NCBI RefSeq assembly: GCF_006345805.1
Contig: NC_043008.1
Location: 79,174,001 to 79,238,000 of the forward strand
Source of the DNA: Octopus sinensis
Taxonomy: Eukaryota
Length of the DNA: 64,000 nt
Reading direction: 5' to 3'
The notes beneath the pieces were generated by a model. The model was not told where the DNA came from. It did not search any database and worked only from the letters and a program-made list of their open reading frames with translations. Position 1 is the stretch's first letter, and every line of letters begins with the position of its first letter. Positions 1 through 63,723 of this stretch are shown in pieces. The position numbers and the translations under genes were made by a program.

Positions 1-3000
1 CTCCCTTTTTCCCTCACAGCTTCTCTCTCTCTCTCCCCGCTACAACGGAATGGACAACATGCAAAAATTAGAGGTGAATGCAAACACTGGCGTCAACAAA
101 AGCCAGCGTAACTGGACGAAAGTAGAGCTGGAAGTTTTCATCAGAGGATGGAGCTCGGCCGACAGATCGCAACCAACTAAAAACATAGTGGCGACCCTGA
201 AAAGCCATGGCTTTATGAGGACGTTGGCGCAAGTAGAGAGGAAGAAAAGAGAAGTCGAAAGGGCCTACACTCTCATTGCACCACACATGGCTTTGCTAAG
301 CCAAGTCCTCAAGGTGGACAAAGACAAAGAGAGAGAGATGGAAACAGGAAACACCAACCACAGAGTGTCAAAAAATGACACGCCCACTGCCACAGTCGAA
401 GAAGGCAAGCAGGGCAAACAACAGATAGGCGGCGATGGGGAAACAGAAAATAACCACCCGGATGAAAAGACCTATGCAGAAAGGAACCAGTGGACAACCG
501 TCCAACGGAGGAAGAAAAAACAGAGAGGAACTGGGGACAAGAAAACCCAGATAACATGCAAATTCTTCCGGAATGGAACCTGCTGGCATGGAGAAACAGG
601 GGAAGGATGCAGGTTCGATCATCCCAGGCCCTATGGAAATTGCATCAAACCCACTCGACCAAAATGCCTTAACCAAAACCAGAACAAATACAAGCTGCCC
701 CAGAAATATGCAGACATAGTGCGTAATGCCCCAACAAGGAGAAGGCGCACATTTGCAGAGGAAATGCAGACAGCGGCAGCAGAACAAAGAAATTTTGTGG
801 AAATGGCAGAGAAAATTGTGGGACAACTGGCCTGGATACATCGTCTTCAGAGCCAGGGGCACTCACAACAGCACTCAAGACCACCACAATCAAGGGACCC
901 AGGGTGGCCACCGCTGACGCCGGCCCAGGTGCCACACCGTCAGCCTTTATTGACACCCCTGGGTGTCTCACCAGTGCTTCTGCTGAATGTCAGAGGTCTG
1001 GTGAAACCCACTAATATGGGTAAAATTCCTTACCTTAGGGACTTGAGCACAAGCAACCATGCAATATGCATAGCGCTGACTGAAACGCACCTGTCAAGCA
1101 GTATAGCAGATGCAGAAATACACATACCGAAGTATACTCTTTTTCGGTCGGACAGGAAGGAAAGAACTCATGGTGGGGTTGCCCTGTACGTCCGTGAAGA
1201 TGTCACACCCATAGTACTGTTGACACACTCAAACTCAGTCTGTGACACACTGATAGTACACATGAAACAACCGAAAATAGTAATATGTGTCACATATCGG
1301 CCACCAGACACCCCTAGTCATGAAGGAGTGTTTGAAGATAGCCTCAGAAGAATAGAAGAAGTCCTGGACAAACTGGACCAGGGTAACACCATTCTACTGC
1401 TGGGAGATTTTAACCTTCCGAAAGTCAAATGGCCAGATGGCCATCTCCTCCCTGGAATGACATCACTTGAACAGAGACAGACAGAGTCCTTGTTGGCTCT
1501 CACACGCAAGTTTTTCATGGAGCAAGCAGTGCTTTGGCCAACAAGAGGTGAGAATGTCTTGGACCTCTGTTTCACAAGCAACCCGATGCTCATCCACAAC
1601 ATAATGGTAACACCAACAATTCTCTCAGATCACAACTTAGTAGAGGTAATGATATATGGTATGAGAGAGTTAGTTGAGACGCAGCCATTAGAAAATACCA
1701 CAGGCCTATCCAGTCTAAACTTCCATAAGGCAAACTGGAAGAAGATCAACGAAGAGATCCGAAAACATGACTGGAGTGACTTCATCACCACACAAGACAC
1801 CAACACACATTTCCAACATTTCATGACAACAATACAGAACATATGCCATAAGTTTGTCCCGGAGAAAAAAGCCAGCGGGCATAGGAACGTTATTCCCAGA
1901 GACAGGAAAATACTTATGAGGCGAAGAGCTAAGCTCTCGAAGCAACTGAATGCATGGCAGAGAAACAATGAGGACTCCACCTGAAACTTTTTGAAACGGA
2001 AACTGCACTCAAACTTTCCTATGAGAAGGAGAGGCAGAGAGAGAAGCCAGGGCCATAGAGAATATTAAAACAAACCCTAAAGCCTTCTTTAAATTTGCGA
2101 AAGAAACCACCTCGGTACACTGCAAGATTGGCCCACTCTTTGATAAAAAGGGCTCTCTAACTGAGGACCCCCAAGGGATAAGTGAAATACTAAAGGAACA
2201 GTATAAAAGTGTGTTCACATCCCCTCTGGAGCACATGCAAATCACAAACCCAGAAGTTTTCTTTGATGCCACAACACTCCAAAACCAAACAACAACCATC
2301 GACCACATAGACATAACAGAGAAGGATGTAATATCTGCCATAGAAGAAATGAGAATAAACTCAGCTGCTGGACCAGATGGATTCCCAGCAGTCCTCCTAA
2401 AAGCATGCAGGCATGCCCTAGCGGGACCACTGAAGAAGCGCTTCAGTGGTTCCTTGGCTAACGGTAAACTGCCCAGGGCGCTAAAGGAAGGCACCATATG
2501 CCCTATCCATAAAGGAGGGAGTAGAGCAGAGGCCAAAAACTACAGGCCAGTCTCCCTGACGTCACACATAAGTAAGATCATGGAACGAATCATCAGAAAA
2601 AAACTGATCACGTTCCTCGAAGAAACTAACCGTCTCACTGACACACAGCATGGCTTTCGCCCAGGAAGAAGCTGCCTTACGCAGCTGTTACAACACTACG
2701 ACTGGGTACTGAAACAACTACTGGATCGCTCACAGGTAGATGTGGTATATCTCGACTTTGCAAAGGCCTTTGACAAAGTCGACCACGGAGTGATATGTCA
2801 CAAATTACTCAGACTCGGCATAACAGGAAAAGTAGGTGAGTGGATACATGACTTCCTGAAGGACAGAAGCCAGATGGTTGCAGCCAATGGAGCCCTCTCG
2901 GGAAAGACACCAATAGCAAGCGGGGTGCCACAGGGCACAGTCTTGGGACCCTTGCTGTTTTTGGTGGCGCTCTTGACATGCCCTTGGTAGCACAAACAAC

Positions 3001-3997
3001 ATCCCTCACTAGCTATGCTGATGACACAAAGGTAGCACAGGCAATCAAAAACCCAGCTGATGCTGACCTTTTACAACAAGATCTGGATGCCATATACAAA
3101 TGGGCTGAAGACAACAACATGCAATTTAATGCTGGTAAATTTCAAGCCTTACAATATCAAGCTGTAAACACATATACATTACAACACAACTATACTGGTC
3201 CAGGAGGGATCGAAATCCCAGTATCGAAATCAATACGGGACCTGGGGATAGACATGAGTGACGATGCATCTTTTTCTTCACACATCGCGAAGGTGGCGAC
3301 AATGTGCAGACGACTCACTGGCTGGATCCTGAGGACATTCCGGACAAGAGACTGCGAGACCATGTTGACACTATGGAGGACATTTGTCCTAAGCCGCCTG
3401 GACTACTGCTCCCAACTGTGGTCACCGCATAGTGTCAAACTAACCACAGAGCTTGAGACAATCCAAAGACATTTCACCAAGATTTCCACCATGAAAGAAA
3501 AGAACTATTGGGAGAGGCTTAGGGAACTCAATTTGTACTCCTTGGAACGAAGACGAGAGAGATATGCAGTGATATACATATGGAAAATCCTGGAGGGACT
3601 AGCACCAAATTTTGGAATTGAGAGCTGTTCCAATCCCCGTACAGGACGTCACTGTGTGGTGCCAAAGGTCCCGTCTTCCACATCCAGGGTAAGGAGCAGA
3701 TACTGTAATAGCCTAGGGTTCAGGGGCCCTCACCTGTTCAACAAACTGCCAAGAAAACTAAGAGATCTACATGATGCGGATGTGGACATTTTCAAAAAAC
3801 ATCTAGACAAGCTGCTTTCCGGGATCCCAGATGAACCCACTGCAAGGTACGAAGGTAAGCTAAGGGCAGCAGCTACAAACTCTCTCTTAGATCAGTGGCC
3901 AGCCACGGCAAACTGGACTTAGAGAGGGTAGCAACAAGGGCGGTGCCCCAGCATGGCCTCAGCCGGATGGCTGAAACAAGTAAAAGAGTAAAAGAGT
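1..3997 (+). mobile_element. Near full-length APE-type non-LTR retrotransposon (CR1/L2 group), copy 1, with (TAAAAGAG)2 tail
   Basis: ORFs 50-1984, 2211-2990 and 2978-3922 carry APE endonuclease (LLLNVRGL, ALTETHL, LLGDFNLP, SDHNLV) and RT (QHGFRPGRSC, YLDFAKAFDKVDH, GVPQGTVLGP, YADD) motifs plus C-terminal YSLERRRERY; the 3' end GAAACAAG-TAAAAGAG-TAAAAGAG abuts (TA)n. Confidence 0.93.
50..3922 (+). pseudogene. LINE polyprotein: Myb/SANT-like N-terminus, CCCH finger, APE, RT; frameshifted near 1975, 2040 and 2972
   Basis: Reading frames can be rejoined by comparison with the second copy at 59.8-63.4 kb (e.g. GTVLGPLLFLVAL/SDMPLVAQTTSLTSYADD). Confidence 0.85.
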
Positions 3998-4048
3998 ATA
4001 TATATGCATGTATATATATATATATATATGCATGTATATATATATATG

Positions 4049-4956
4049 CCAACCGACACGGGGGCCAGACAGAGCTGGCAAACGGCCACGAGCGAATGGT
4101 GATACGTAAAAGCACCATTCGCTCGTGGCCGTTTGCCAGCTCTGTCTGGCCCCGTGTCGGGCACGTAAAAGCACCATCCGTTCGTGTTCGTTGCCAGCCT
4201 CGCCTGGCCCCATGCCGGGACACGTAAAAGCACCGTCCGTTCGTGGCCGTTTGCCAGCTCCGTCTGGCCCCGTGTCGGTGGCACATAAAAGCACCGTCCG
4301 TTCGTGTCCGTTGCCAGCCTTGGCTGGCCCCCGTGCCGGTGACACGTAAAAGCACCGTCCGTTCGTGGCCGTTTGCCAGCTCTGTCTGGCCCCGTGTCAG
4401 TGGCACGTAAAAGCACCATCTGTTCGTGTTCGTTGCCAGCCTCGGCTGGCCCCCATGCAGGTGACATGTAAAAGCACCGTCCGTTCGTGGCCGTTTGCCA
4501 GCTCTGTCTGGCCCCGTGTCGGTGGCACGTAAAAGCACCATACGTTCGTGTTCGTAACCAGCCTCGGCTGGCCCCCGTGCAGGTGACACGTAAAAGCACC
4601 GTCCGTTCGTGGCCGTTTGCCAGCTCTGTCTGGCCCTGTGTCGGTGGCACGTAAAAGCACCATCCGTTCGTGTCCGTTGCCAGCATTGCCTGACCCCGTG
4701 CCGGTGACATGTAAAAACACCATCCGTTCGTGGCCATTCGCCAGCTCTGTCTGGCACCTGTGCAGGTGGCACGTAAAAAACACCCACTACACTCGCGGAG
4801 TGGTTGGTGTTAGGAAGGGCATCCAGCCGTAGAAACACTGCCAAATCTGACTGGGCCTGATGAAGCCTTCCGGCTTCACAGACCCCAGTTAAACCGTCCA
4901 ACCCATGCTAGCATGGAAAGCGGACGCTAAATGATGATGATGATGATGATGATGAT
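4049..4956 (+). mobile_element. 5'-truncated RTE LINE 3' UTR copy with expanded tandem array and (GAT)n tail
   Basis: Ends in CCAACCCATGCTAGCATGGAAAGCGGACGCTAAATGATGATG; the same sequence directly follows the RTE ORFs at 13357-13620 (-), 20403-20760 (-) and 47400-47927 (+); flanked on both sides by (TA)n-TGCATG-(TA)n. Confidence 0.85.
4053..4785 (+). repeat. Tandem array of 12 ~61-bp units alternating A/B (higher-order ~122 bp)
   Basis: Anchor C(G/A)TAAAAGCACC recurs at about 4105, 4164, 4223, 4284, 4345, 4406, 4467, 4528, 4589, 4650, 4710 and 4772. Confidence 0.92.
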
Positions 4957-8855: not shown

Positions 8856-8929
8856 GTATAGCTTTGATAGGTTTCACCCAGTATAGGCCCAGGCCATGTC
8901 TAATTTAATAGCACCACCTGGTGAAGTCT

Positions 8930-11345
8930 TTTAGTTATATATGGTGCACCATGGCGCACTCTAGCAATGAGTTATTATTGTTGGAAATATATCCAGGTGT
9001 ATGAAGTTGGTCTGGGATTTTTTGAAGAAATTTATCCAATGAACATTTGAATTTTATGGGATCCATTTCTGTTTTGACATATTTTGGTATGGTATTAAAG
9101 AGAGCTGGACCGGTTAAGGTAAAGTAATTGTAACAATTGTTCAATTTTTGTAGTGGGTTGATAGCCTTGGATGGATTTTAAAATTGATGCCAACATCATT
9201 TGTGCAATATTGATGGAATATTTTCCACATAACACAAATGATGTAGCATTCCCGATGGTGTTGGAGAGAGTAGAGATTGAGTTTCTTTAGTCGACCCCTA
9301 ATAATCAATGCCTCTCATGCCATCTGTCTCTCTTGTTATTGACCTCTGGAGTGCTTCTACTTTCATAATGTGTTGCTTTGTGTGGGGGGACCACAGTAGG
9401 CAAGAGTATTCAAGGTGTGTCAGGCAAAAGTAGAGTAGAGAAGGATGATGGTTTGGGCATCTCTAGACTGGAAAGTTCTCAGAATCCAGGAGCAAATCTT
9501 GTGGGCCAATCAACCTTGTTGTTTATATGGGAACTCCAGCTCAGATTATTATCAACAATTACTCCAAGGTCTCTGGTGTTGTTAGATGACACTAGGGAGT
9601 TGCCAAGGGAATAACATATGGTAATTTCAGAGTTTCTTCTTTTCCAAAGTGGATCAAATCAAACATATCTTCATTTAAAAGCATATTGTTTTTTCCTGCC
9701 CATTGGACAATAGCAAAGAGATCTGACTGAAGGCATGTTCGGCCCCATGCCATTTATGGCTTTCTGGAGTTTGGAATCATCTGCAAAGATTTTCAATGTA
9801 GAATATTTGATGACATCTACAATGCTGTTGATGTAAATAATGAAGAGGAGTGGGCCCAACACAGTACCTTGTGGGACACCACTACTGACTTTGGCTGGGC
9901 TGGATTGTATTCCCTCAAACACAACATGTTGGGTTCTCTTTGTCAGGAAATATTTTATCCACTGCAGTAGCTTTCCACCGACTCTGATGTTGAACAGTTT
10001 CTTCAGCAGGATTTTGTGGTCCACTCTGTCAAATGCATTGCTGAAATCAAGGTATATGACTTCAGTGTTGGAGCCCTCTCCCAACGCTTTTAAGATGTCA
10101 TCAAAATGGTGCAGAAGCTGTGACAGGCTGTCCCTGCCATCACGGAAACCATGCTGGTTGGGGTTGAGCAGAAATGTTAGCACGGCGGGCAAAATGCTTA
10201 GCAGTTCAAATTCCGCCAAGGTTGACTTTGCCTTTCATACTTTCGGGATCAGTAAATTAAGTACCAGTTACACACTGGGTTTGATGTAATCGACTTAATC
10301 CCTTTGTCTGACCTTGTTTGTCCCCTCTATGTTAAGCCCCTTGTGGGCAATAAAGAAATAAGATTGTTGTCTTCGAGGAAGTGAGTTATTCGAGATCTCA
10401 CCACCCTCTCAAATACTTCAATGATATGAGAAGTGAGTGAAATTGGATGGTGGTTCACTGCAAGAGAGTTGTTTCCCTTTTTGAAGACTGGAACGACAGA
10501 CTGTGAAAGAAAATGTTCAGGAATGTAGCCTGCATCAAGTGAATTTCTCCAGGGCTCAGCTAGAGGGGATGCATCTTCAGGACAGTGACGAGGAACTTAT
10601 CAAGTTGTACTTGATCTTATCTATTTCTGTTATGATATCAGGAGCACCAAAAGTTATGTCAGATATGGTTAGTTGAAGGTTTACATCATTGATACTAGCC
10701 AGATCAATAGCATTAGTGCTATTGAAGACAGAGCAGTATTGTCTCTGCAGTAACTCGCACATGGATTTTGCATCATCATGTAGAGTGTTGTTCTCATCAA
10801 CCAGAGGACTAACTGTGGAAAGAGCGTCTTTATGTTTTTTTGCAAATGAAAAGAACATTTTGAGTTTTATTTTCTCATTGGCCCAATTCTCCTCAGCTGC
10901 TCTTTGTTAATGATGGTCATCATGCTTTTTTGGAGGTTATGTTTTTTTCCATTGGAGTGATGCAATGGCAATCGAATGGGTGTATTACTGCTGGCAGTAT
11001 TTAAGTTGGTTAATTTTCTTGTTAATTCTTTTTATTTTTCTTATAATTGCTCTTCTATTTCTAGGGATTCTGCACTTAGATTTGTATACTGATCTTAATG
11101 GAGTATGTTTTGTGCATTTATTTATCACAGTATCTACAAATGTCTGCCATGATGTGTTTATGTTGTAGGTGGGGTGTGTGTGTATGAAGGCCCAAATCAA
11201 CTTGTGAAAGATCATGATTCATAGCATCCCAGTCTGCCTTATGAAGATCCATAAAGTCAAATGGATGGACTGGAGAGATGTCACTAGATTTGATCTTTGG
11301 GTGGTAGAATCTCAGATCGCAGAGAACCATGTCATAGTCTAAAAG
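8930..11345 (-). mobile_element. Degenerate CR1/L2-group LINE (linker + RT + C-terminus)
   Basis: QHGFRDG, IYLDFSNAFDRVDH, SGVPQGTVLGPLLF, FADDSKL, GPALFNTIP..LDKFLQKIPD; multiple stops and frameshifts. Confidence 0.85.
10175..10363 (+). mobile_element. SINE 3' fragment inserted in the LINE RT
   Basis: Non-coding block (GTTGACTTTGCCTTTCAT...AAGCCCCTTGTGGGCAATAAAGAAATA) separates the contiguous RT motifs EDNNL and LNPNQHGF. Confidence 0.6.
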
Positions 11346-11496: not shown

Positions 11497-11597
11497 CACA
11501 GGAGTGGCTGTGTGGTAAGTAGCTTGCTTACCAACCACATGGTTCCGGGTCCAGTCCCCTGCGTGGCACCTTGGGCAAGTGTCTTCTTGGGCCAACA
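11497..11597 (+). mobile_element. 5' fragment of tRNA-head SINE (same family as 39148-39540)
   Basis: CAGGAGTGGCTGTGTGGTAAGTAGCTTG...GGTTCCGGGTCCAGTCCC matches the 39148 head. Confidence 0.8.
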
Positions 11598-38600: not shown

Positions 38601-39071
38601 ACACACAAGGAAACAGAGTTGCATACATATATAAGCACACACTCACACATACATAAAAAATACACAAACACGGACATCCAAGCACATGAATATGCAGAAT
38701 ACATACATACAGATGCACACACATACATACATATGCATACACACACATGTATGCATACATACACACATACATATGTACATACATGCATGCATAGGCACAC
38801 ACACGCACACACACACACACACACATGCGCACAAACAAACAAAAAGGAACACAGTGTAAATAACGGACAGAGTCAAGACTATTGAAAAGGTTGCAAGATG
38901 CAATGAAAATTTTAGGAAAATAGAAATAAGAAATAAGTGGAAATTTTACCGGTGAGTGTGTTACATTATAAGGCACAAAAAGAAAATGACTCTCCCCAGG
39001 CACAACAGTATATATACACACACACACACACATATATATATACATACACACACACATATACATACGCATAC

Positions 39072-39147
<76 letters not shown>

Positions 39148-39151
<4 letters not shown>

Positions 39152-39318
39152 CAGGAGTGGCTGTGTGGTAAGTAGCTTGCTAAGCAACCACATGGTTCCG
39201 GGTTCAGTCCCACTGCGTGGCATCTTGGGCAAGTGTCTTCTGCTATAGCCCCGGGCCGACCAATGCCTTGTGAGTGGATTTGGTAGACGGAAACTGAAAG
39301 AAGCCTGTCGTATATATG

Positions 39319-39351
<33 letters not shown>

Positions 39352-39540
39352 TTGTCCCCCTAACATTGCTTGACAACCGATGCTGGTGTGTTTACGTCCC
39401 CGTCACTTAGCGGTTCGGCAAAAGAGACCGATAGAATAAGTACTGGGCTTACAAAGAATAAGTCCTGGGGTCGATTTGCTCGACTAAAGGCGGTGCTCCA
39501 GCATGGCCGCAGTCAAATGACTGAAACAAGTAAAAGAGTA
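39148..39540 (+). mobile_element. Full-length tRNA-head SINE with LINE-derived 3' tail
   Basis: Box A-like TGGCTGTGTGG, box B-like GGTTCAGTCCC, internal (TA)/(TG) tract; the last 52 nt match the LINE end at 3939-3990. Confidence 0.88.
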
Positions 39541-39838
39541 TATATATATATATATCTTCTTATGATAAAAGGCAGATTTTCTCTGCCTCCCAAACCGTTC
39601 GTTTTTTATACAGTTCTACAATATAGAATTTCTTCAATTGGAATTTACCTATCATTTTTCCAAGTAGATTCCATTGGGTCGTAGCGTGTAAAGTTTTTTC
39701 AATTTCACCCCCAATTAAGCAAAAATTCGAGAAAACTTAATATTTTACGATTTCCCTCTTTCATTTCAAGTGCTTTACTCCTACCATTACCACTACACTT
39801 TCTCCTCCTTTCTCTTTGCAAGTGTCCAACAATTTAAA

Positions 39839-40159
39839 GACTCCGCCGGTTACGACGACGAGGGTCCCAGCTGATTCGATCAACGGAACAGCTTGCTCGT
39901 GAAATTAACGTGCAAATGGCTGAGCATTCCACAGACACGTGTACCCTTAACGTAGTTCTCGGGGATAATCAGCGTGACACAGAGAGTGACAAGGCTGACC
40001 CTTTGAAATACAAGTACAACTCATTTTTGCCAGCTGAGTGGACTGGAGCAACGTGAAATAAAGTGTCTTGCTCAAGGACACAACGCGTCGCCGGGAATCG
40101 AACTCACAACCTTACGATCATGAGCCGAATGCCCTAACCACTAAGCCACGCGCCCTCAC
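39839..40159 (-). mobile_element. tRNA-head SINE (second family) with ~16-bp TSD
   Basis: Head GTGAGGGCGCGTGGCTTAGTGG...GAGTTCGATTCCC; TSD TGTCCAACAATT(T)AAA at 39823 and 40160. Confidence 0.85.
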
Positions 40160-40852
40160 TGTCCAACAATTAAAGTGAAAGTGTTTATATAAAAGGGATG
40201 AGCAATTAATACTGGTCATCCTTTTTGCTAGAAGATCATCCGCTATGGTCTTATACGCTACACCACTGGTTTTCAATTCATATTAATCAAATTAATATTC
40301 AATTTTTCACCCTTATTATGTGTGTGTGTATTAGCAATTCGTATAAAATTGCATCAATGACTTGAACTTGAATAAGTGGTTTCACATAAATGGGGATACA
40401 TTAAAAAGATTTGTTGTTATTATTACTGTTTGACTATTGTAATCACGTTTGTTGGTTCCTCGTCAGGGAAACGTTGTTGTGTTGCATTTGTTAAATAATT
40501 GTAAACCATAACCCTCCCCCTTTCAGAGAAGGGGCTTTAGTTATTGTTTTAAAATTGAATTGTGTCCCTGTTTGGGTAAATTGACAATATTTTCACCATC
40601 TTTATGGAAGCATTTTTGTTAAAATGTCTTCGATAGAAGAAAGTCCAAAAATGAATTTCGCTGCAGCCGTACACTTCTATACAAGAGGGAGTACAAGATC
40701 CAATTGATCGAAGTTGCAAGAGACGGGCCTACAATTCCAGTCTGTTATATATTTTGAGTATTGTTATCACTAGCGATATCAAGATATAACTTTCTATTTT
40801 GTATTTTATGTGTAGATGTATATATATATATAGATGTACATGTAATATGTAC

Positions 40853-40928
<76 letters not shown>

Positions 40929-40932
<4 letters not shown>

Positions 40933-41099
40933 CAGGAGTGGCTGTGTGGTAAGTAGCTTGCTAAGCAACCACATGGTTCCGGGTTCAGTCCCACTGCGTG
41001 GCATCTTGGGCAAGTGTCTTCTGCTATAGCCCCGGGCCGACCAATGCCTTGTGAGTGGATTTGGTAGACGGAAACTGAAAGAAGCCTGTCGTATATATG

Positions 41100-41132
<33 letters not shown>

Positions 41133-41321
41133 TTGTCCCCCTAACATTGCTTGACAACCGATGCTGGTGTGTTTACGTCCCCGTCACTTAGCGGTTCGGC
41201 AAAAGAGACCGATAGAATAAGTACTGGGCTTACAAAGAATAAGTCCTGGGGTCGATTTGCTCGACTAAAGGCGGTGCTCCAGCATGGCCGCAGTCAAATG
41301 ACTGAAACAAGTAAAAGAGTA
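40929..41321 (+). mobile_element. Duplicate of the 39148 SINE
   Basis: Essentially identical sequence. Confidence 0.88.
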
Positions 41322-41617
41322 TATATATATATATCTTCTTATGATAAAAGGCAGATTTTCTCTGCCTCCCAAACCGTTCGTTTTTTATACAGTTCTACAA
41401 TATAGAATTTCTTCAATTGGAATTTACCTATCATTTTTCCAAGTAGATTCCATTGGGTCGTAGCGTGTAAAGTTTTTTCAATTTCACCCCCAATTAAGCA
41501 AAAATTCGAGAAAACTTAATATTTTACGATTTCCCTCTTTCATTTCAAGTGCTTTACTCCTACCATTACCACTACACTTTCTCCTCCTTTCTCTTTGCAA
41601 GTGTCCAACAATTTAAA

Positions 41618-41939
41618 GACTCCGCCGGTTACGACAACGAGGCTCCCAGCTGATTCGATCAACGGAACAGCTTGCTCGGGAAATTAACGTGCAAGTGGTT
41701 GAGTACTCCACAGACACGTGTACCCTTAACGTAGTTCTCGGGGATAATCAGCGTGACACAGAGAGTGACAAGGCTGACCCTTTGAAATACAAGTACAACT
41801 CATTTTTGCCAGCTGAGTGGACTGGAGCAGCGTGAAAATAAAGTGTCCTGCTGAAGGACACGACGCGCCAGCAGGAATCGAACTCACAACCTTACGATCA
41901 TGAGCCGAATGCCCTAACCACTAAGCCACGCGCCCTCAC
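41618..41939 (-). mobile_element. Duplicate of the 39839 SINE (diverged)
   Basis: Same TSD and flanks; about 16 differences from copy A. Confidence 0.85.
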
Positions 41940-42729
41940 TGTCCAACAATTAAAGTGAAAGTGTTTATATAAAAGGGATGAGCAATTAATACTGGTCATC
42001 CTTTTTGCTAGAAGATCATCCGCTATGGTCTTATACGCTACACCACTGGTTTTCAATTCATATTAATCAAATTAATATTCAATTTTTCACCCTTATTATG
42101 TGTGTGTGTATTAGCAATTCGTATAAAATTGCATCAATGACTTGAACTTGAATAAGTGGTTTCACATAAATGGGGATACATTAAAAAGATTTGTTGTTAT
42201 TATTACTGTTTGACTATTGTAATCACGTTTGTTGGTTCCTCGTCAGGGAAACGTTGTTGTGTTGCATTTGTTAAATAATTGTAAACCATAACCCTCCCCC
42301 TTCAGAGAAGGGGCTTTAGTTATTGTTTTAAAATTGAATTGTGTCCCTGTTTGGGTAAATTGACAATATTTTCACCATCTTTATGGAAGCATTTTTGTTA
42401 AAATGTCTTCGATAGAAGAAAGTCCAAAAATGAATTTCGCTGCAGCCGTACACTTCTATACAAGAGGGAGTACAAGATCCAATTGATCGAAGTTGCAAGA
42501 GACGGGCCTACAATTCCAGTCTGTTATATATTTTGAGTATTGTTATCACTAGCGATATCAAGATATAACTTTCTATTTTGTATTTTATGTGTAGATGTAT
42601 ATATATATATAGATGTACATGTAATATGTACACATATATATATATATATATACACATATATACAGGCATAATATATCTACCCATACACACACATACACAC
42701 ATAGGGGCAGGTGTGGCTGTGTGGTAACA

Positions 42730-44699: not shown

Positions 44700-47600
44700 T
44701 GACGCTACTTTCCCTCGTCCCAGGGTCTCAAGGGCCCATACTTCTCACACCCTCAGGGTTGGTACTTTCGATGTTGGCACACTGATAGGTAGGTCTGGTG
44801 AGATTGTTGAGATGCTTGAACAGAGATATGTTGATATGTGCTACATCCAAGAAGTAAGGTGGAGAGGAGCTCTGCTAGGTTCCTCACAGGCAAAGAACAC
44901 AGGTACAAGATTTTCTGGGCAGGGAACACTGACATGGTCGGGGGCGTAGATATACTTCTTGTGGAGAAATGGGTAGATAAGGTAATTTAGGTAGTCAGAG
45001 TATGTGACAGAATACTTAAGATTAGAGTAGTGCTTCATCATGGGTTAGCAACCTCAGCTGGGGCTATCCAATTGACAGAAAGATCAATTCTATGACACCC
45101 TCTTGCAGACTACTGCATTGACGAATGACAGGGACCTTCTCTTTGTGGCTGGTGACTTCAATGGACATGTCGGACAACATGCCGGGGACTTCCATTTTCG
45201 TACATGGAGGCTATGGTTTTGGCTCCCGCAATAAGGAGGGAACCAGGCTGCTGGAGTTCTGCGATGCGAATGATCTTATGGTTTGCAGTACTAACTTCAG
45301 AAAACCTGCCAGTCACCTAGTCACCTATTGTTCTAGCAGACACACTAGCCAAATTGACTACATCCTCACCAGAAAAAGGGAAAGATGGCTGCTTATAAAT
45401 GCCAAAACCTTCCCAGGTGAAGAATGTACCTCACAACATAGACTTGTAGTTAGTGACTTCAGGATCAGGGCTAAGTGGATGCCCAGAAGACGACCAGCAT
45501 GGCGAAGAAGGGTCTGGAAGCTTAAAGATCCTGCCAATGGACAGAGATTTAGAGACATAATACTTGAAGCCTTTGACAAAATAGCAGGGGATATAGCTTC
45601 ACACAATGTAGATGACAACTGGTGGTTTCTACAGGACAATCTGCTGAGGGCCACTGTGGATGGTGCAAAGTCCCCTCTCGACCCAAAATAACGTTGTGGT
45701 GGAACAATGTTGTTGACAAGGCTATTAGAGAAAAGAAACAGGCTTAGAAGGACTGGAAGGATGGTGGTAGCAAGGAATTGTATCAGACTGCCAGAAGGGA
45801 AGCAGATAAGAAAAAGTTTGCCAATGTTCCGTGCCGTGAGGACCAAAGACTTGAGGTATTTCATGTTGCAAGACAGTGTGTGAGAGACAAATGTGTCCGC
45901 ATGGATGATAGTTCACTTACACTAAATGAGGCTGCAAAGAGAGAGGTTTGGATATGCCACTATGAAAGGTTGCTCAATAAAGAAAATGAATGGGAGAAAG
46001 AGAGTCTGCCGAACAGAGGGGCCTGCTATCCGAGTTGACAGTAACTTGGTAGATAAAGCAATTAAGAGTATGAAGACAGGGAAAGCCCCCAGCCCATCAG
46101 GAATCACTGCAGAGATGCTCAAAATATCAGGCAGTGTCAGCCATAGCCTAGTCACCCATATAGTTAACCAGGTGATACATGAAGGAGTCATACCCAATGA
46201 CTGGTGTAGCTGCACTATAGTCAACTGCTACAAAGGTAAAGATGACGCTTTAGATACAAATAATTACAGAAGTATCAAGTTGTTGGATCATGTAATGAAG
46301 GTCACGGAGAGGATCATAGCCCAACTAATTGGGGAGACAGTCAGTTTAGATGAGATGCAGTTTGGGTTCATGCCAGGAAAAAGCACCACTGATGCTATAT
46401 TTCTGGTAAGACAGCTGCAGGAGAAATACCTGGCCAAAGATAAACCTCTGTACCTGGCCTTTGTTGACTTAGAGAAAGCCTTTGACAGGGTCCCCCGATC
46501 CCTTATCTGGTGGTCAATGAGAAAACTAGGGATAGATGAATGGTTAGTGAGAGCTGTGCAAGCCATGTACAGGGACGCTGTCAGTAAGACAACGAGTAAG
46601 TGAAAAATTCCAAGTGGAGGTAGGGGTCCACCAAGGTTCAGTCCTCAGCCCCCTCCTATTTATCATAGTCTTCCAGGCAATAACAGAGGAATTCAAGACA
46701 GGATGCCCCTGCAAGCTCCTCTATGCTGATGACCTTGCGCTAATTGCTGAGTCACTATCAGAACTAGAGGGGACATTTTCAATGGTTAGCTCATATAATT
46801 TCGTTAAGTTGATTACTCGTTTCTCGTCCTATTTATAGAGTTTCTACCTACGCCTTTTCTACAGATCAAGCGCTGAAAGTGTAGCTGCTAAAATGAGAAT
46901 AGCCTGGGCAAAGTTCAGAGAGCTCTTACTTCTGCTGGTGACAAAAGGCCTCTCGCTCAGAGTAAAAGGTAGACTGTATGACACGTGTGTGAACAGCCAT
47001 GCTACATGGCAGTGAAACATGGGCTGTGACTGCAGAGGACATGCATAAGGTCGCAAGAAATGAAGCCAGTATGATCCGATGGATGTGTAATGTCAGTGTG
47101 CATACTTGACAGAATGTAAGTACCTTGAGAGAAAAGTTGAACCTAAGAAGCATCATATGTAGTGTACAAGAGAGACGACTGTGCTGGTATGGTTATGTGG
47201 CGGGAATGGATGAAGATAGCTGTGTGAAAAAGTGTCACACCCTAGTGGTTGAGGGAACCTGTGGAAAAGGTAGACACAGGAAGACCTGAAAGTGGTGAAG
47301 CATGACCTTTGAACATTAGGTCTCACTGAGGCAATGACTAGTGACTGAGACTTTTGGAAATATGCTGTGCTTGAGATGACCCGGCAAGCCAAATGAGACT
47401 ATAACCTTGTGGCCTATGCCAGGGGTGTAACCGGCCCACTTATGCAGACCTTCCCTTCATTGGACACTGCTTGCGAATACCTGTTGAGGCAAGTGAAATC
47501 GAAATCAAATTCGATGACTGGCATCCATGCTAGTGGAGCACTAAGAGCTCCATCCAAGCGTGATCATTGCCAGAGCAGCTAACTGGCGTCTGTGCCAGTG

Positions 47601-56887: not shown

Positions 56888-57249
56888 TAGATATAGATAT
56901 ATATATATATAGATATATATATAGATATAGATATATACACACATACACATACAAAGATAAATTGATAGATACAACTGAGTGGGCAAACAAAAATATGAGA
57001 CACAGCCTAGTGCTTTTATTTATGTTGATGAGCCTGGTACTTATTCTATTAGTTTGTTCTTGTAAAACCAGTAAGTTATGGCAATGTAAATAAATGAATT
57101 GCAGTTGTGAAGCAATGATGAGGGGCGAAACAGAGAGACAAAGACAAACACATACACTTACATGTATACATACATATATATGATTTATTTGTTTCAGTTC
57201 CTGTCTACGAAATCCATATATCTATCTATCTATATATATATAGAAAACT

Positions 57250-57558
57250 ACCTAGTGCTTTTTTTTATTTTGATAAGCCTGGTACTTATTCTATCAGTTT
57301 CTTCTTGTGAAACCAGTAAGTTATGGTGATGTAAATAAACGAACACCAGTTGTAAAGCAGTGATGAGGGCAAGTGACATAGACTTACATATATATACAAT
57401 TGATTTCTTTAAGTTTCTGTCTACAAAATCCACTGACAAGGCTTCGGTTGGTCTGAGGCTATAGCAGAAGACACATGCCAAGTTACCACACAGTGGGACT
57501 GAACTGAGGACCATGTGTTTTGGAACCAAGTTTGTTACCACACAGCCACACCTGCCCC
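57250..57558 (-). mobile_element. Diverged tRNA-head SINE (39148 family), with partial duplicate at ~56990-57210
   Basis: Reverse complement reads GTGGCTGTGTGGTAA...GTTCAGTCCCACTGTGTGG...GTGTCTTCTGCTATAGCC. Confidence 0.75.
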
Positions 57559-59199: not shown

Positions 59200-59700
59200 T
59201 GAGAACCTGCGACTCACAGGCCATGGTCCAACCAAATCAAGCTAGCTATTTGACACTCGAATCTGCGACCATTACAAACCTTCAAACAAGGGAGGTCAGT
59301 CGCTTCATCCTGCCAGTCAGATAGCTACAGACGACGTTTCAGGGTTGTTGCCCCTTATCAATGCAGCGTAGTCAGACTTGCAGGTGTTGCTACTGATCGT
59401 CCCACTTCGAAGGCTTTATTTACCTAGTTTCAGTGGAATACATCCTCTTGTTTTCAATAATGGAAATATTAAAATTATTAAGTCTCTCTAAAGGAGATTA
59501 TGGCAGCGTTACTGGAAATTAATAGTTATCGCAATACTAATATGGCAGTCTTGTAAATATAAGACTAAAGCTGTCGCTGGTTAGCTCCAAGAGGCCACCG
59601 CCTCAAGCTAGCTATTTGACACACGAATCTGCGTCCATTACAAACCTTCGAACGAGGGAGGTCAGTCGCTTCATCCTGCCAGTCAGGCAGCTACATATAT
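59200..59700 (-). mobile_element. Probable Penelope-type terminal fragment, internally duplicated (~95 bp: 59239-59330 and 59602-59695), with decayed hammerhead-like motif
   Basis: CAAGCTAGCTATTTGACAC...GCCAGTCAG..AGCTAC occurs twice; motif at 59325-59366. Confidence 0.45.
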
Positions 59701-59715
59701 ATATATATATATACA

Positions 59716-59761
<46 letters not shown>

Positions 59762-59769
59762 TTTGAGAT

Positions 59770-62700
59770 ATACATCTTTGAGAATGAGCGGGGCAAAGAT
59801 GGCAAGAATGGAGACGATGAAAGAAGTCACCCCCACCTGGTGGACGCCCGGGAGGAGGTTTTGAATGAGAAACCTGCCCGGGAAGTGAACCCAGGTGCAA
59901 GTTCTCCAACCGGCAGCAAGGGCCATGGAGATGGAGAACCCGGTGAAGAGGTAGAGGGAGGAAGAAGAACTAAAAGAAGGACTGGAAGAGCTAAAGGAAA
60001 AGAAAAAGCTCAAGCAGGACCAACGGGTGAAACAACCAGGAATAGAAGTGGAACCGCAAAGGATGGAACCAAACAGCGCACACGGGTGTGTATGTTCTAC
60101 CTGAGAGGTTCCTGCTGGCATGGAAAGGAAGGTGCAGGCTGCCGCTTTGCACATCGGGGACCCTGCCACAGAGACACGAGGCAGATGGACAAACCATCAA
60201 CACAAAGAAAAGGGATGGACCACGCACCACCTGCCCCAAAGCGGAGGTACGCAGATGTTGTGCGCGCCACAAACAGCCAACATGATGTTGTCGAAAGAGC
60301 AGCTGCTGAGCAACAATCTTTTTTGTGCATGGCACAAAAGATTGTACAGCAGCTGACCTGGCTTCATCAAACCCAAGCCCGCAGGTGGGACTACCCACTA
60401 TATACCAGACCACCACAGCAAACAGACACAGGATGGACACCGCCGGCAACAATGTACACCTTACCTCGATACTACTACTGAACATCAGAGGACTGCAAAC
60501 ACTCAGTAACAGGACAAAGATCCCGTTCCTGAGAGACTTTGTTGCATGCAATCAAGCCATATGCATAGCACTTACAGAAACGCACCTGAAACCGGACATA
60601 GCAGATGCGGAGTTACACATACCACAGTATGCTGTACTACGGACCGACAGGAAAGAAAGGAGTCATGGAGGTGTTGCTATGTACATCCGTGAGGACCTCA
60701 CACCCCAGGTCCTCTTGTCATACTCAAACTCGGTGTGTGACACACTAATTGTACATATTAAGCAACTTGATGTAGTTGTGTGTGCTACATATCGCCCTCC
60801 AGATGCCCCAAGCCATGTGGGCAAGTTTGAAGACTGCCTTATAAAAATAGAAGAAATTCTAACCACATTAGAACACACATAGGTGTGCTTCTTATGGGAG
60901 ACTTCAATCCGCCCAATGTCAGATGGCCCGAGGGCCTTTCTCTCCCAGGAATGACAAGATGTGAACGAGGACAGGCGAGGTCCCTCCTGAACCTCATCAA
61001 CACCCTGTACATGGAGCAGGTAATACTCCAACCAACCAGGGCAGGTAACACACTGGATCTCTGCTTCACAAATGACATGGATCTCATCCATAATGTGAAA
61101 GTGACACCGACACTACTCTCGGATCACAACATGATAGAGCTGACCATGTACGGGCCAAAAGAGAGCACGGACATGCAGCCTACAAGAAACCCTCAAAATC
61201 TTTCCAGCTTGAACTACCATAAGGCAAACTGGAAAAAATTGAGAAAGAGATCCTCAAACAAAACTGGCCTAAATGTCTCTCCTCGCCAGACATCGACGTG
61301 AAACTTCAACAATTCATGTCTGTAATGCAAGCCATATGCTACAAATGTGTCCCAGAGAGAAAGGCCACTGTACACAAGAACAAAATCCCCAGAGAGAGGA
61401 AAATCTTAATGAGACGGCGTGCGAAATTTTCAAATCGCCTAAACAAACAGATTGAAAGCAGTGAAAAGTCCCGCCTAAAAATAAAACTGTTGGAAATCGA
61501 AAAATGTCTGCAACTCTCCCATGAAAAAGAAAGAGCAGACAAAGAAGCCTGGGCTATAGAAAACATAAAATCTAACCCCAGAGCTTTCTACAGGTATGCC
61601 AAAGAAACAGCTACAGTGCACTGTAGAATAGGGCACTCCTCGAAAAGGATGGCACACTTACAGGAAAACCAATGAGGGTAAGTGAAATACTGAATGAGCA
61701 ATTCAAGAGTGTTTTCACTCCACCCCTTGGGCATCTCCAAATCACCAATCCAACTGACTTTTTTACCACTGCAGATATAAAATCAGAGGCGGCGACGATA
61801 GATTACATCGATATAAAGGAAGACGATGTAACCAAGGCTATAGATGAAATGAAAACAGACTCAGCTACTGGCCCCGATGGATTCCCGGCAATCCTCCTAA
61901 AAGCATGTAAGAGAGTCCTAGCAAGACCACTGCAGTTCCTCTTTCAGAGCTTCCTTGCAGCTGGCAAACTTCCAGGAAACTGACTGAAGGAAGGTAAAAT
62001 ATGCCCCATTCATAAAGGAGGTAGCAGAGCGGAAGCCAAGAACTATAGACCTATCTCTCTGACCTCACACATCAGCAAGGTCATGGAACGAATAGTCAGA
62101 AGGAAGCTGATCACCTTCCTTGAAGAGAATGACTTGCTGCCCGACACCCAACATGGTTTCCGACCAGGGAGAAGCTGTTTAACTCAGCTCCTACAACACT
62201 ATGACTGGGTGCTGAAACGGCTGCTCAACCACTCAAATGTGGAAATGATATATCTCGACTTTGCAAAGGCCTTTGATAAAGTCGATCATGGAATGATATG
62301 TCACAAACTGCGTGATCTCAACAATAGTTGGAAAACTGGGAGAATGGCTTCATGACTTTCTGAAGGATAGAAGTCAGGTGGTAGTAGCCAATGGGGCCAC
62401 CTCCATTAACACACAAATAGTGAGCGGTGTTCCGCAGGGCACTGTTCTGGGACCACTACTGTTCATAATGGCCCTCTCAGACATGCCCTCAGCCACGCAG
62501 AGAGCCACGATCACAAGTTATGCAGATGATACAAAAGTTTCACAGGCAATACAGAACCCTGAGGACACTAAACACCTGCAATGTGAGCTGGACGAAATAT
62601 ACAAGTGGGCTGAAAAGAATAGCATGCAGTTCAATGCTGGAAAGTTTCAAGCTTTATACTATCAGCATGCAAAACTGAATGCAATACCCAATGAATACAC

Positions 62701-63511
62701 TGGACCCGGAGGGATTGCAATCCCAGAGGCACAATCAGTGCGTGACCTGGGTATTCACATGAGTGATGACGCGACCTTTCATGTACATGTTGCTAAACTG
62801 ACAATGAAATGTAGACGGCTGGCTGGATGGATTCTTAGAACCTTTAGAACAAGAGAACAAGAAACCATGATGGTCCTCTGGAAGACACTTGTCCTAAGCC
62901 ACTTTGACTATGCTCTCAGCTATGGTCACCATCCAGTGTCAAGTTGATCACAGAACTTGAGGCGATCCAACGAAGCTACACAAAGAAGATAGCCTCTATG
63001 CAGAATGTAAGCTACTGGGAAGACTCAAGAGATTAAAATTATATTCCCTGGAGCGTAGGCGGGAAAGATATGCCATAATATACATCTGGAAGATCCTGGA
63101 GGGAAGTGTCCTGAACTTTGGCATCGAGAGTTACGCAAATGCCAGAACTGGGCGCCACTGTGTGGTACCTAGGACTCCAAACCTGCCATCAAGATGTAGG
63201 ACAAGATTCTGTGATAGCCTGGGCTTCCGAGGCCCACAGCTCTTCAATATCCTCCCGAAACCTGAGAGACCTGCATGGGGTGGATACAGATGTCTTTAAA
63301 ATGAAGCTGGATCTCTTCCTGTCAGGTGTCCCAGATGAACCAACTTCACGGCAGGAGGGGCAGATGAGGGCAGCTGCATCGAACTCTCTCATGCACCAAT
63401 AGCAGTTGCTAGAAAGCCTCCATGAAGTGAAACCATGTAGCAACACCAAATGGCGGTGCCCCAGCATGGCCACAGGCTCATAAGCTGAAACTAGAATCAA
63501 TCAATCAATCA

Positions 63512-63515
<4 letters not shown>
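59770..63515 (+). mobile_element. CR1/L2-group LINE, copy 2 (related subfamily), disrupted, (AATC)n tail
   Basis: CCCH finger CMFYLRGSCWHGKEGAGCRFAH, APE, RT, YSLERRRERY; multiple frameshifts and stops. Confidence 0.92.
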
Positions 63516-63606
<91 letters not shown>

Positions 63607-63723
63607 ATATGTATATGTATATATATAAATATATGTATATGTATATGTATATATATATATATATGTATATGTATATGTATATATATATATATGTATATGT
63701 ATATGTATATATATATATGTATA

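Follow-up and report, generated by a model that had tools for sequence, protein, structure and literature searches.

A SINE of Octopus sinensis and its probable LINE partner lineage have a two-hairpin 3' tail in common

A SINE of Octopus sinensis ends in a 55-nt tail that is homologous to the 3' end of a LINE lineage, and copies of both elements are present in the 64,000-nt stretch of DNA analysed here (the window). The tail was passed from the LINE to the SINE, its two adjacent hairpins are conserved and covary, SINE and LINE end in the same terminal repeat, and their 3' junctions are rich in (TA)n. We suggest that the two elements very probably form a stringent-type SINE/LINE partnership in this octopod, in which the SINE, by virtue of a tail from this LINE lineage, is copied in trans.

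Organization of the SINE and its LINE-like tail

As originally predicted, the SINE tail at 39489-39540 and the LINE tail at 3939-3990 are identical at 46 of 52 positions. The six differences are at positions 9, 21, 25, 27, 28 and 32 of the 52-mer, and the similarity is far above chance. Using blastn, positions 337-391 of the SINE match positions 3936-3990 of the LINE with 87% identity (E 1e-12); this similarity is confined to the final 55 nt of the SINE, and upstream of this box the two elements have nothing in common. The 20-nt head of the tail, GGCGGTGCYCCAGCATGGCC, has four matches with up to three mismatches in the window (at 3939, 39489, 41270 and 63452) and none in 100 shuffles of the window. 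Because the match at 41270 is part of a tandem duplicate, it is not independent, and the 64-kb window contains one independent SINE with a LINE-like tail. The prediction also held for the hairpins CAGTC-AAAT-GACTG in the SINE (39510-39523) and CAGCC-GGAT-GGCTG in the LINE (3960-3973), which differ by the replacement of one C-G pair by U-A, and for the tail of a second LINE copy (63452-63495), which has the same 20-nt head, the variant hairpin CA[G]GCT-CATA-AGCTG and (AATC)n replacing (GTAAAAGA)n.

The full-length SINE (39148..39540, + strand; about 391 nt) is composed of a head, a CORE-like domain, an internal microsatellite, a 3' module and the LINE-derived tail. In the head, we read Pol III promoter-like motifs from the sequence (39158..39211, +), i.e. 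a box A-like TGGCTGTGTGG (39158-39168) and a box B-like GGTTCAGTCCC (39201-39211) that are 43 nt apart. Neither ARAGORN nor Rfam (E up to 10) called a tRNA in the head, and it is the promoter boxes that suggest a tRNA origin. The CORE-like central domain (39214..39310, +) contains CTTGGGCAAGT, which together with the next bases resembles what we take to be the CORE start of CORE-SINEs. It is followed by an internal (TA)n(TG)n microsatellite at a module boundary (39311..39355, +), by a 3' body module of 130 nt that is not LINE-like (39356..39485, +) and by the 55-nt LINE-derived tail (39486..39540, +) with hairpin 1 (39489-39508), hairpin 2 (39510-39523), GAAAC (39523-39527) and GTAAAAGA-GTA (39530-39540). 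The SINE has stops in all frames and no internal TTTT run, the nearest TTTT being ~35 nt downstream. The SINE is located between (TA)n(GA)n and (TA)n microsatellite sequence, in which no unambiguous target-site duplications could be read.

Additional SINE sequences in the window comprise a second copy (40929..41321, +), a head-only fragment (11499..11587, +) with 94% identity to SINE positions 3-92, and an older relic (57137..57555, -) with about 77-80% identity that has the head, the central domain and part of the 3' module (57359-57269), but either lacks the LINE-like tail or has (TA)n(GATA)n in its place. We rejected the second copy, with its tail at 41270, as an independent insertion because it is inside a tandem segmental duplication of ~1.78 kb (39032-40815 / 40816-42600), in which 39032-40500 corresponds to 40816-42280 at 97.8% identity and which includes the SINE as well as its unique flanks. 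This duplication is either real or an assembly artefact. Behind the older relic, at 57137-57260 (-), a second partial SINE body (from GGATTTCGTAGACAGGAACTGAAAC on) represents a local partial tandem duplication.

An independent SINE copy is present in L069, a metagenome contig that was reached by comparing the translation of an open frame in the SINE with a collection of proteins, in which it was the sole match (P0121). This copy is 96.2% identical to the window SINE over 399 aligned positions and agrees with it in the internal microsatellite, in the junction of body and tail and in the CAGTC/GACTG stem. Our comparison of SINE copies with a tail, therefore, includes two independent sequences, those of the window and L069. 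SINE relatives in Argonauta hians (L074 14455-14359, L074 12858-12950 and L002 12297-12201) match SINE positions 65-161, and thus the central domain, with 84-88% identity. After ...GAAGCCYGTCG, these relatives continue with another 3' module that ends in (ACATTT)n, and their flanking modules differ; the point at which the modules switch is the exact site of the internal microsatellite in the window SINE. SINEs with the same central domain and another tail are expected if LINE-derived tails are exchangeable, and the exchange of tails and modules is known for conserved-domain SINEs of molluscs and others (PMC11481361, PMC5804259).

The LINE copies and conservation of the tail

LINE copy 1 (LINE 1; 2..3998, +) codes for a CCCH finger, an APE endonuclease and a reverse transcriptase. 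The Pfam endonuclease domains PF14529 and PF03372 are followed by the reverse transcriptase domain PF00078 in one ORF, which ends with the stop codon at 3920-3922 and the frame of which is open to the left window edge. The 3' UTR of 76 nt (3923..3998, +) contains hairpin 1 (3939-3958), hairpin 2 (3960-3973), GAAAC (3973-3977) and (GTAAAAGA)2-GTA (3980-3998), after which (TA)n begins. LINE copy 2 (LINE 2; 59760..63515, +) has the same domain order, a stop codon at 63400-63402, hairpin 1 at 63452-63471, the variant hairpin 2 at 63473-63487 and (AATC)n at 63494-63515, and it has (TA)n on either side. With 70.6% DNA identity to LINE 1 over 2.8 kb, it represents a sister lineage. LINE 1 contains at least three frameshifts (near 1975, 2040 and 2985) and LINE 2 many frame breaks, and both are dead copies. 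A third LINE relic (8860..10572, -) is older and more distant (26-48% protein identity to LINE 1) and has a decayed tail box at 8919-8868. This tail, GGTGGTGC...CATGGCC...GGGTGAAAC, which can be read as a decayed or an expanded two-hairpin box, is a weak match to a covariance model of the tail (12.3 bits, E 0.064).

The best protein relatives are from a metagenome scaffold (71%) and Argonauta hians (59%), and the only PDB matches to the LINE reverse transcriptase are relatives of L1 and R2 (E 1e-17 and 3e-14). No clade name could be obtained from the Pfam domains, which are generic, or from the names of the homologue clusters, which are uninformative; by its architecture, i.e. APE endonuclease and reverse transcriptase in one ORF and a hairpin followed by an 8-mer with no poly(A), the element fits the label CR1/L2. 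In LINE 1 (50-1000) and LINE 2 (59840-60300), an N-terminal extension of ~300 aa is fused in frame to the endonuclease; it has a single CCCH finger, CxxxxxxxCxxxxxCxxxH, with weak Pfam matches to Torus and zf-CCCH. In LINE 2, no separate ORF1 is located upstream of this ORF, up to the 5' end of the element. A reverse transcriptase fragment at 46049-46546, which is 29% identical to the LINE 1 reverse transcriptase, probably belongs to a different retroelement family. Downstream, LINE 1 is adjoined by a minisatellite (4098-4778) that contains internal inverted repeats and has a unit length of 61 or 122 bp, corresponding to about 11 or 5.6 copies, with 79-90% matches.

For LINE relatives from metagenome scaffolds, Argonauta, L073 and others, we retrieved the DNA 3' of the stop codon. 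In every octopod-type relative for which the 3' end was retrieved, the box is 3' of the stop codon, i.e. in LINE 1, in LINE 2, in the metagenome scaffolds L001, L070 and L071 and in L002 and L074 from Argonauta hians (59% protein identity), and it is also present in the distant L073, from an NCBI assembly, at 46% protein identity. Altogether, eight LINE copies from at least four lineages and two genera have the box after their stop codon, as does one distant relative. By contrast, the more distant LINE relatives L072, L075 and L076 (46-48% protein identity) lack it and, thus, the box is not universal in the wider LINE group. Hairpin 1 is identical at 20 of 20 positions in LINE 1, LINE 2 and L001, while their coding DNA is merely 70-74% identical, and the region between the stop codon and the box is unalignable among the LINEs. 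Being kept across diverged LINE lineages, the box is an old and selectively maintained LINE feature that was borrowed by the SINE. In other words, the tail is ancestral to the LINE lineage and moved from LINE to SINE.

These data also bear on the opposite scenario, in which a SINE fragment became located at the 3' end of a LINE, and on the possibility of an artefact, in which a tail-only LINE fragment happens to lie beside an unrelated SINE. Tail-only LINE fragments do exist (L074 12373-12310), and the window is rich in nested repeats. However, the box is not confined to a single LINE copy, it extends to another genus and to LINE lineages with as little as 46% protein identity, the junction between SINE body and tail is identical in the independent L069 copy, and SINE and LINE lack common sequence upstream of the box. 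Thus, we reject both scenarios as highly improbable.

When the window and all octopod loci were searched with the covariance model, no further strong copies of the tail were detected in the window; the model recovered, in addition to the weak tail of the third relic, two extra Argonauta fragments. The 20-mer GGCGGTGCNCCAGCATGGCC matched at least 66 loci in JGI metagenome contigs, and the listed ones are GC-rich bacterial chance matches with neither hairpin nor tail. The tail-only fragment in Argonauta hians (L074 12310-12373, -) is a LINE insertion of 60 nt that is cut inside hairpin 1 and continues into (AAACATTA)n. It represents either an extreme 5' truncation or the mobilization of a minimal tail RNA and shows that insertion of the tail end alone occurs.

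Nearly every 3' junction of the LINEs and SINEs, and some of the 5' junctions, are abutted by (TA)n (window 3999-4050, 39541-39557, 63516-63700 and 59693-59757; L001 1773-1820; L074 11880-11920), and just 3.2% of window positions are followed by (TA)4 within 6 nt. This pattern reflects either a preference of the endonuclease for (TA)n targets or a seeding of (TA)n microsatellites by the tails of the elements.

Two hairpins in the tail

Two adjacent hairpins are predicted for the tail in nine of nine single-sequence folds as well as by RNAalifold. Hairpin 1, GGC-G-GUGC-NCCA-GCAU-G-GCC, is almost unchanging in sequence, and both its G.U pair and its G/G mismatch are invariant. It is directly followed by hairpin 2, CAGCC-loop-GGCUG, in which the stem is conserved while the loop, 3-5 nt in length, is free in sequence. 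3' of the hairpins are GAAAC and, instead of poly(A), a lineage-specific terminal repeat with a unit of about 8 nt. The structure proposed originally was, therefore, correct for the second hairpin and overlooked the first, which is inside what had been described as the 20-nt head.

In an alignment of nine distinct tails, standard pairs occupy 98.1% of the pair cells, and sliding the 3' partners by 1-3 columns lowers this share to 20-45%. Both sides of a pair have changed in three cases: C-G / U.G / U-A in the outer stem of hairpin 1 (Argonauta), U-A / C-G in the inner stem of hairpin 1 (L073) and C-G / U-A / G-C in hairpin 2 (SINE and L073). None of 500 shuffles reached the observed covariation score. 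For a sample of nine related sequences, we consider this covariation as supportive, not conclusive, of the predicted hairpins. The swap of C-G for U-A between LINE 1 and the SINE, which had been put forward as a compensatory stem change, is present, but this single pair is non-significant alone: in simulations, six random changes leave all 12 pairs intact in 6-17% of cases. Part of the reason is that C-G can reach U-A via a U.G wobble. Support for the structure, thus, rests on the family-wide comparison and not on the single compensatory pair.

A bolder reading, which we offer as speculation and judge unlikely, is that the tail is a previously undescribed bipartite recognition module, in which hairpin 1, with its G.U closing pair, G/G mismatch and NCCA loop, is near-invariant and hairpin 2 is conserved in structure only. 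The module would be that of a CCCH-finger LINE lineage that extends from Octopus-type genomes to Argonauta and beyond, and this lineage, rather than the hitherto studied RTE or Dong elements, would drive the very large SINE expansion specific to octopus.

The source of the SINE tail and a model for SINE copying

The terminal repeat differs between LINE lineages, with GTAAAAGA in LINE 1, L001 and the SINE, AATAAAAG in L070, AAACATTA in Argonauta-type copies and AATC in LINE 2; in LINE 1, L001 and the SINE, the repeat ends in GTAAAAGA-GTA. The original prediction that the autonomous partner of the SINE had been identified can be upheld at the level of the LINE lineage, but not at the level of the copies in the window, which are dead; an intact source element was not seen.

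In our model, the single-ORF LINE with its CCCH finger, APE endonuclease and reverse transcriptase ends in a short 3' UTR with two hairpins and, judging from those L2 and CR1 systems that have been tested (PMC3747384, PMC8665684), the LINE protein would recognize this hairpin module of its own RNA. The protein would then nick the target DNA, and reverse transcription would be primed on the terminal repeat. The SINE, consisting of a Pol III-type head, a CORE-like domain and another module, would have acquired its last ~55 nt from a (GTAAAAGA)n LINE lineage. As a result, SINE RNA made by Pol III could be copied and inserted in trans by the protein of that LINE. In this model, the protein binding, the trans-mobilization and the actual source subfamily are inferred.

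Among the sampled LINE tails, that of LINE 1 is closest to the SINE tail (46/52), and it is the sole one with the identical ending AAG-GTAAAAGA-GTA. On the other hand, the U-A stem of the SINE (CAGTC/GACTG) is found in both SINE copies and in none of the eight aligned LINE tails, suggesting that the actual source is perhaps an unsampled subfamily of the LINE 1 lineage. Accordingly, the true source and driver could be an unsampled subfamily of the same LINE family with a CAGUC/GACUG stem, in which case LINE 1 would be a cousin of the partner, and the U-A pair would have been inherited from the LINE instead of having arisen by compensation within the SINE. The diversity of the LINE lineages (70-74% DNA identity among LINE 1, LINE 2 and L001) and the T in loop 1 of L070, which is the same as in the SINE, are in line with this idea, while the closeness of the LINE 1 tail and its ending speak against it. 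We regard it as possible but less likely than not, and it would refine, not replace, the proposed partnership with this LINE family.

Alternatively, the tail could be a historical passenger in a SINE that is amplified by another LINE (e.g. RTE or Dong) or by relaxed recognition of the terminal repeat. Recent LINE activity in octopus has been reported for RTE and Dong-R4 (PMC9115989, PMC13282606), and the older SINE relic (57555-57137) has no tail. However, CR1-type LINEs are also among the recently active octopus families (PMC13282606, Table 1), and the tail-less relic may simply be truncated. Moreover, the tail is intact, with every pair kept, in two SINE copies that are 96% identical, and its terminal 8-mer matches this LINE lineage and none other seen here. 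We, therefore, think it improbable that the tail is a passenger, and favor a tail that serves in copying by the LINE lineage from which it came.

The octopod pair among known SINE/LINE pairs

That SINEs and LINEs can have a tail with a stem-loop in common entered the textbooks in 1996-2002. Conceptually, the octopod pair adds nothing new; it is a sound, if ordinary, case of the classic relationship between stringent LINEs and their SINEs. The logic of tail borrowing has been described for many SINE/LINE pairs, and a table of such pairs from 2013 has no octopus entry (PMC3747384). In octopus genomes, SINEs account for about a tenth of the sequence and for about 40% of all repeats (PMC13282606, PMC8967140). 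The literature searched classes these SINEs only as tRNA-Core or tRNA-Deu and does not name a LINE partner, although it describes LINEs of the CR1, RTE and Dong types in octopus. In the literature outside of Repbase, Dfam and SINEBase, we found no named partner LINE for octopus SINEs, and the tail sequence, as text, was not found in the literature searched. SINEs have been linked to cephalopod genome evolution, and attention to LINEs has so far been on RTE and Dong. Knowing the LINE lineage that supplies the tail points to the enzyme to examine for the octopod SINE explosion. For mobilization assays, the tail offers a compact and covariation-supported RNA element composed of two hairpins, GAAAC and an 8-mer.

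UnaL2/UnaSINE1 of eel and zebrafish ZfL2 (L2 clade) are experimentally tested stringent pairs. Kajikawa and Okada are said to have tested the eel pair in 2002, with the SINE being mobilized in trans via its tail. In these systems, a LINE and a CORE-type tRNA-SINE have a tail of ~50-60 nt in common, in which a stem-loop is followed by a short repeat that is not poly(A); the octopod pair has a tail of this kind, with a SINE that is CORE-like and putatively tRNA-derived. However, the octopod tail, which is known here from sequence alone, has two adjacent hairpins, an ~8-nt repeat, compared to (TGTAA)n in UnaL2, and an unrelated sequence. The octopod pair also resembles MIR/L2 of mammals, in which a CORE-SINE has the 3' end of its partner LINE. 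By contrast, MIR/L2 is ancient and extinct, has a longer and unrelated tail and has no preserved tail repeat.

From octopus, the SINEs OR1, OR2 and OK were reportedly described by Ohshima and Okada in 1994. Similar to these, the window SINE is an octopod SINE with a Pol III-type head and the CORE-like motif CTTGGGCAAGT and, by description, it is probably the same as, or a relative of, one of these families. OR1 and OR2 are counted as CORE-SINEs (PMC4824008, PMC4758252, PMC5804259), and the tRNA-Core class dominates octopus SINEs (PMC8967140).

Amniote CR1 elements have a 3' hairpin and an 8-bp microsatellite, a proposed recognition site for the reverse transcriptase (PMC8665684, PMC4316615, PMC5729268). 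In amniotes, as in the octopod pair, endonuclease and reverse transcriptase are in one ORF, a hairpin is combined with an 8-mer, and SINEs, for instance the tortoise Pol III/SINE and passerine TguSINE1, arose by tail capture. However, in the LINEs described here, which we liken to CR1 by architecture, the octamers are GTAAAAGA, AATAAAAG and AAACATTA instead of ATTCTRTG, one lineage has (AATC)n, and an N-terminal CCCH finger is fused to the protein.

In bivalves, the partners of CORE, V, Meta and Deu SINEs are CR1, CR1-Zenon, L2 and Nimb LINEs (PMC11481361; also PMC4824008, PMC4758252), and mollusc SINE/LINE pairs have tails of 35-61 bp with 72-95% identity (PMC11481361). The bivalve papers do not include octopods, and the host described here is a cephalopod with another tail sequence. 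Nevertheless, the overall design is similar in the two groups, with a conserved central domain, exchangeable LINE tails and mosaic switching of tails.
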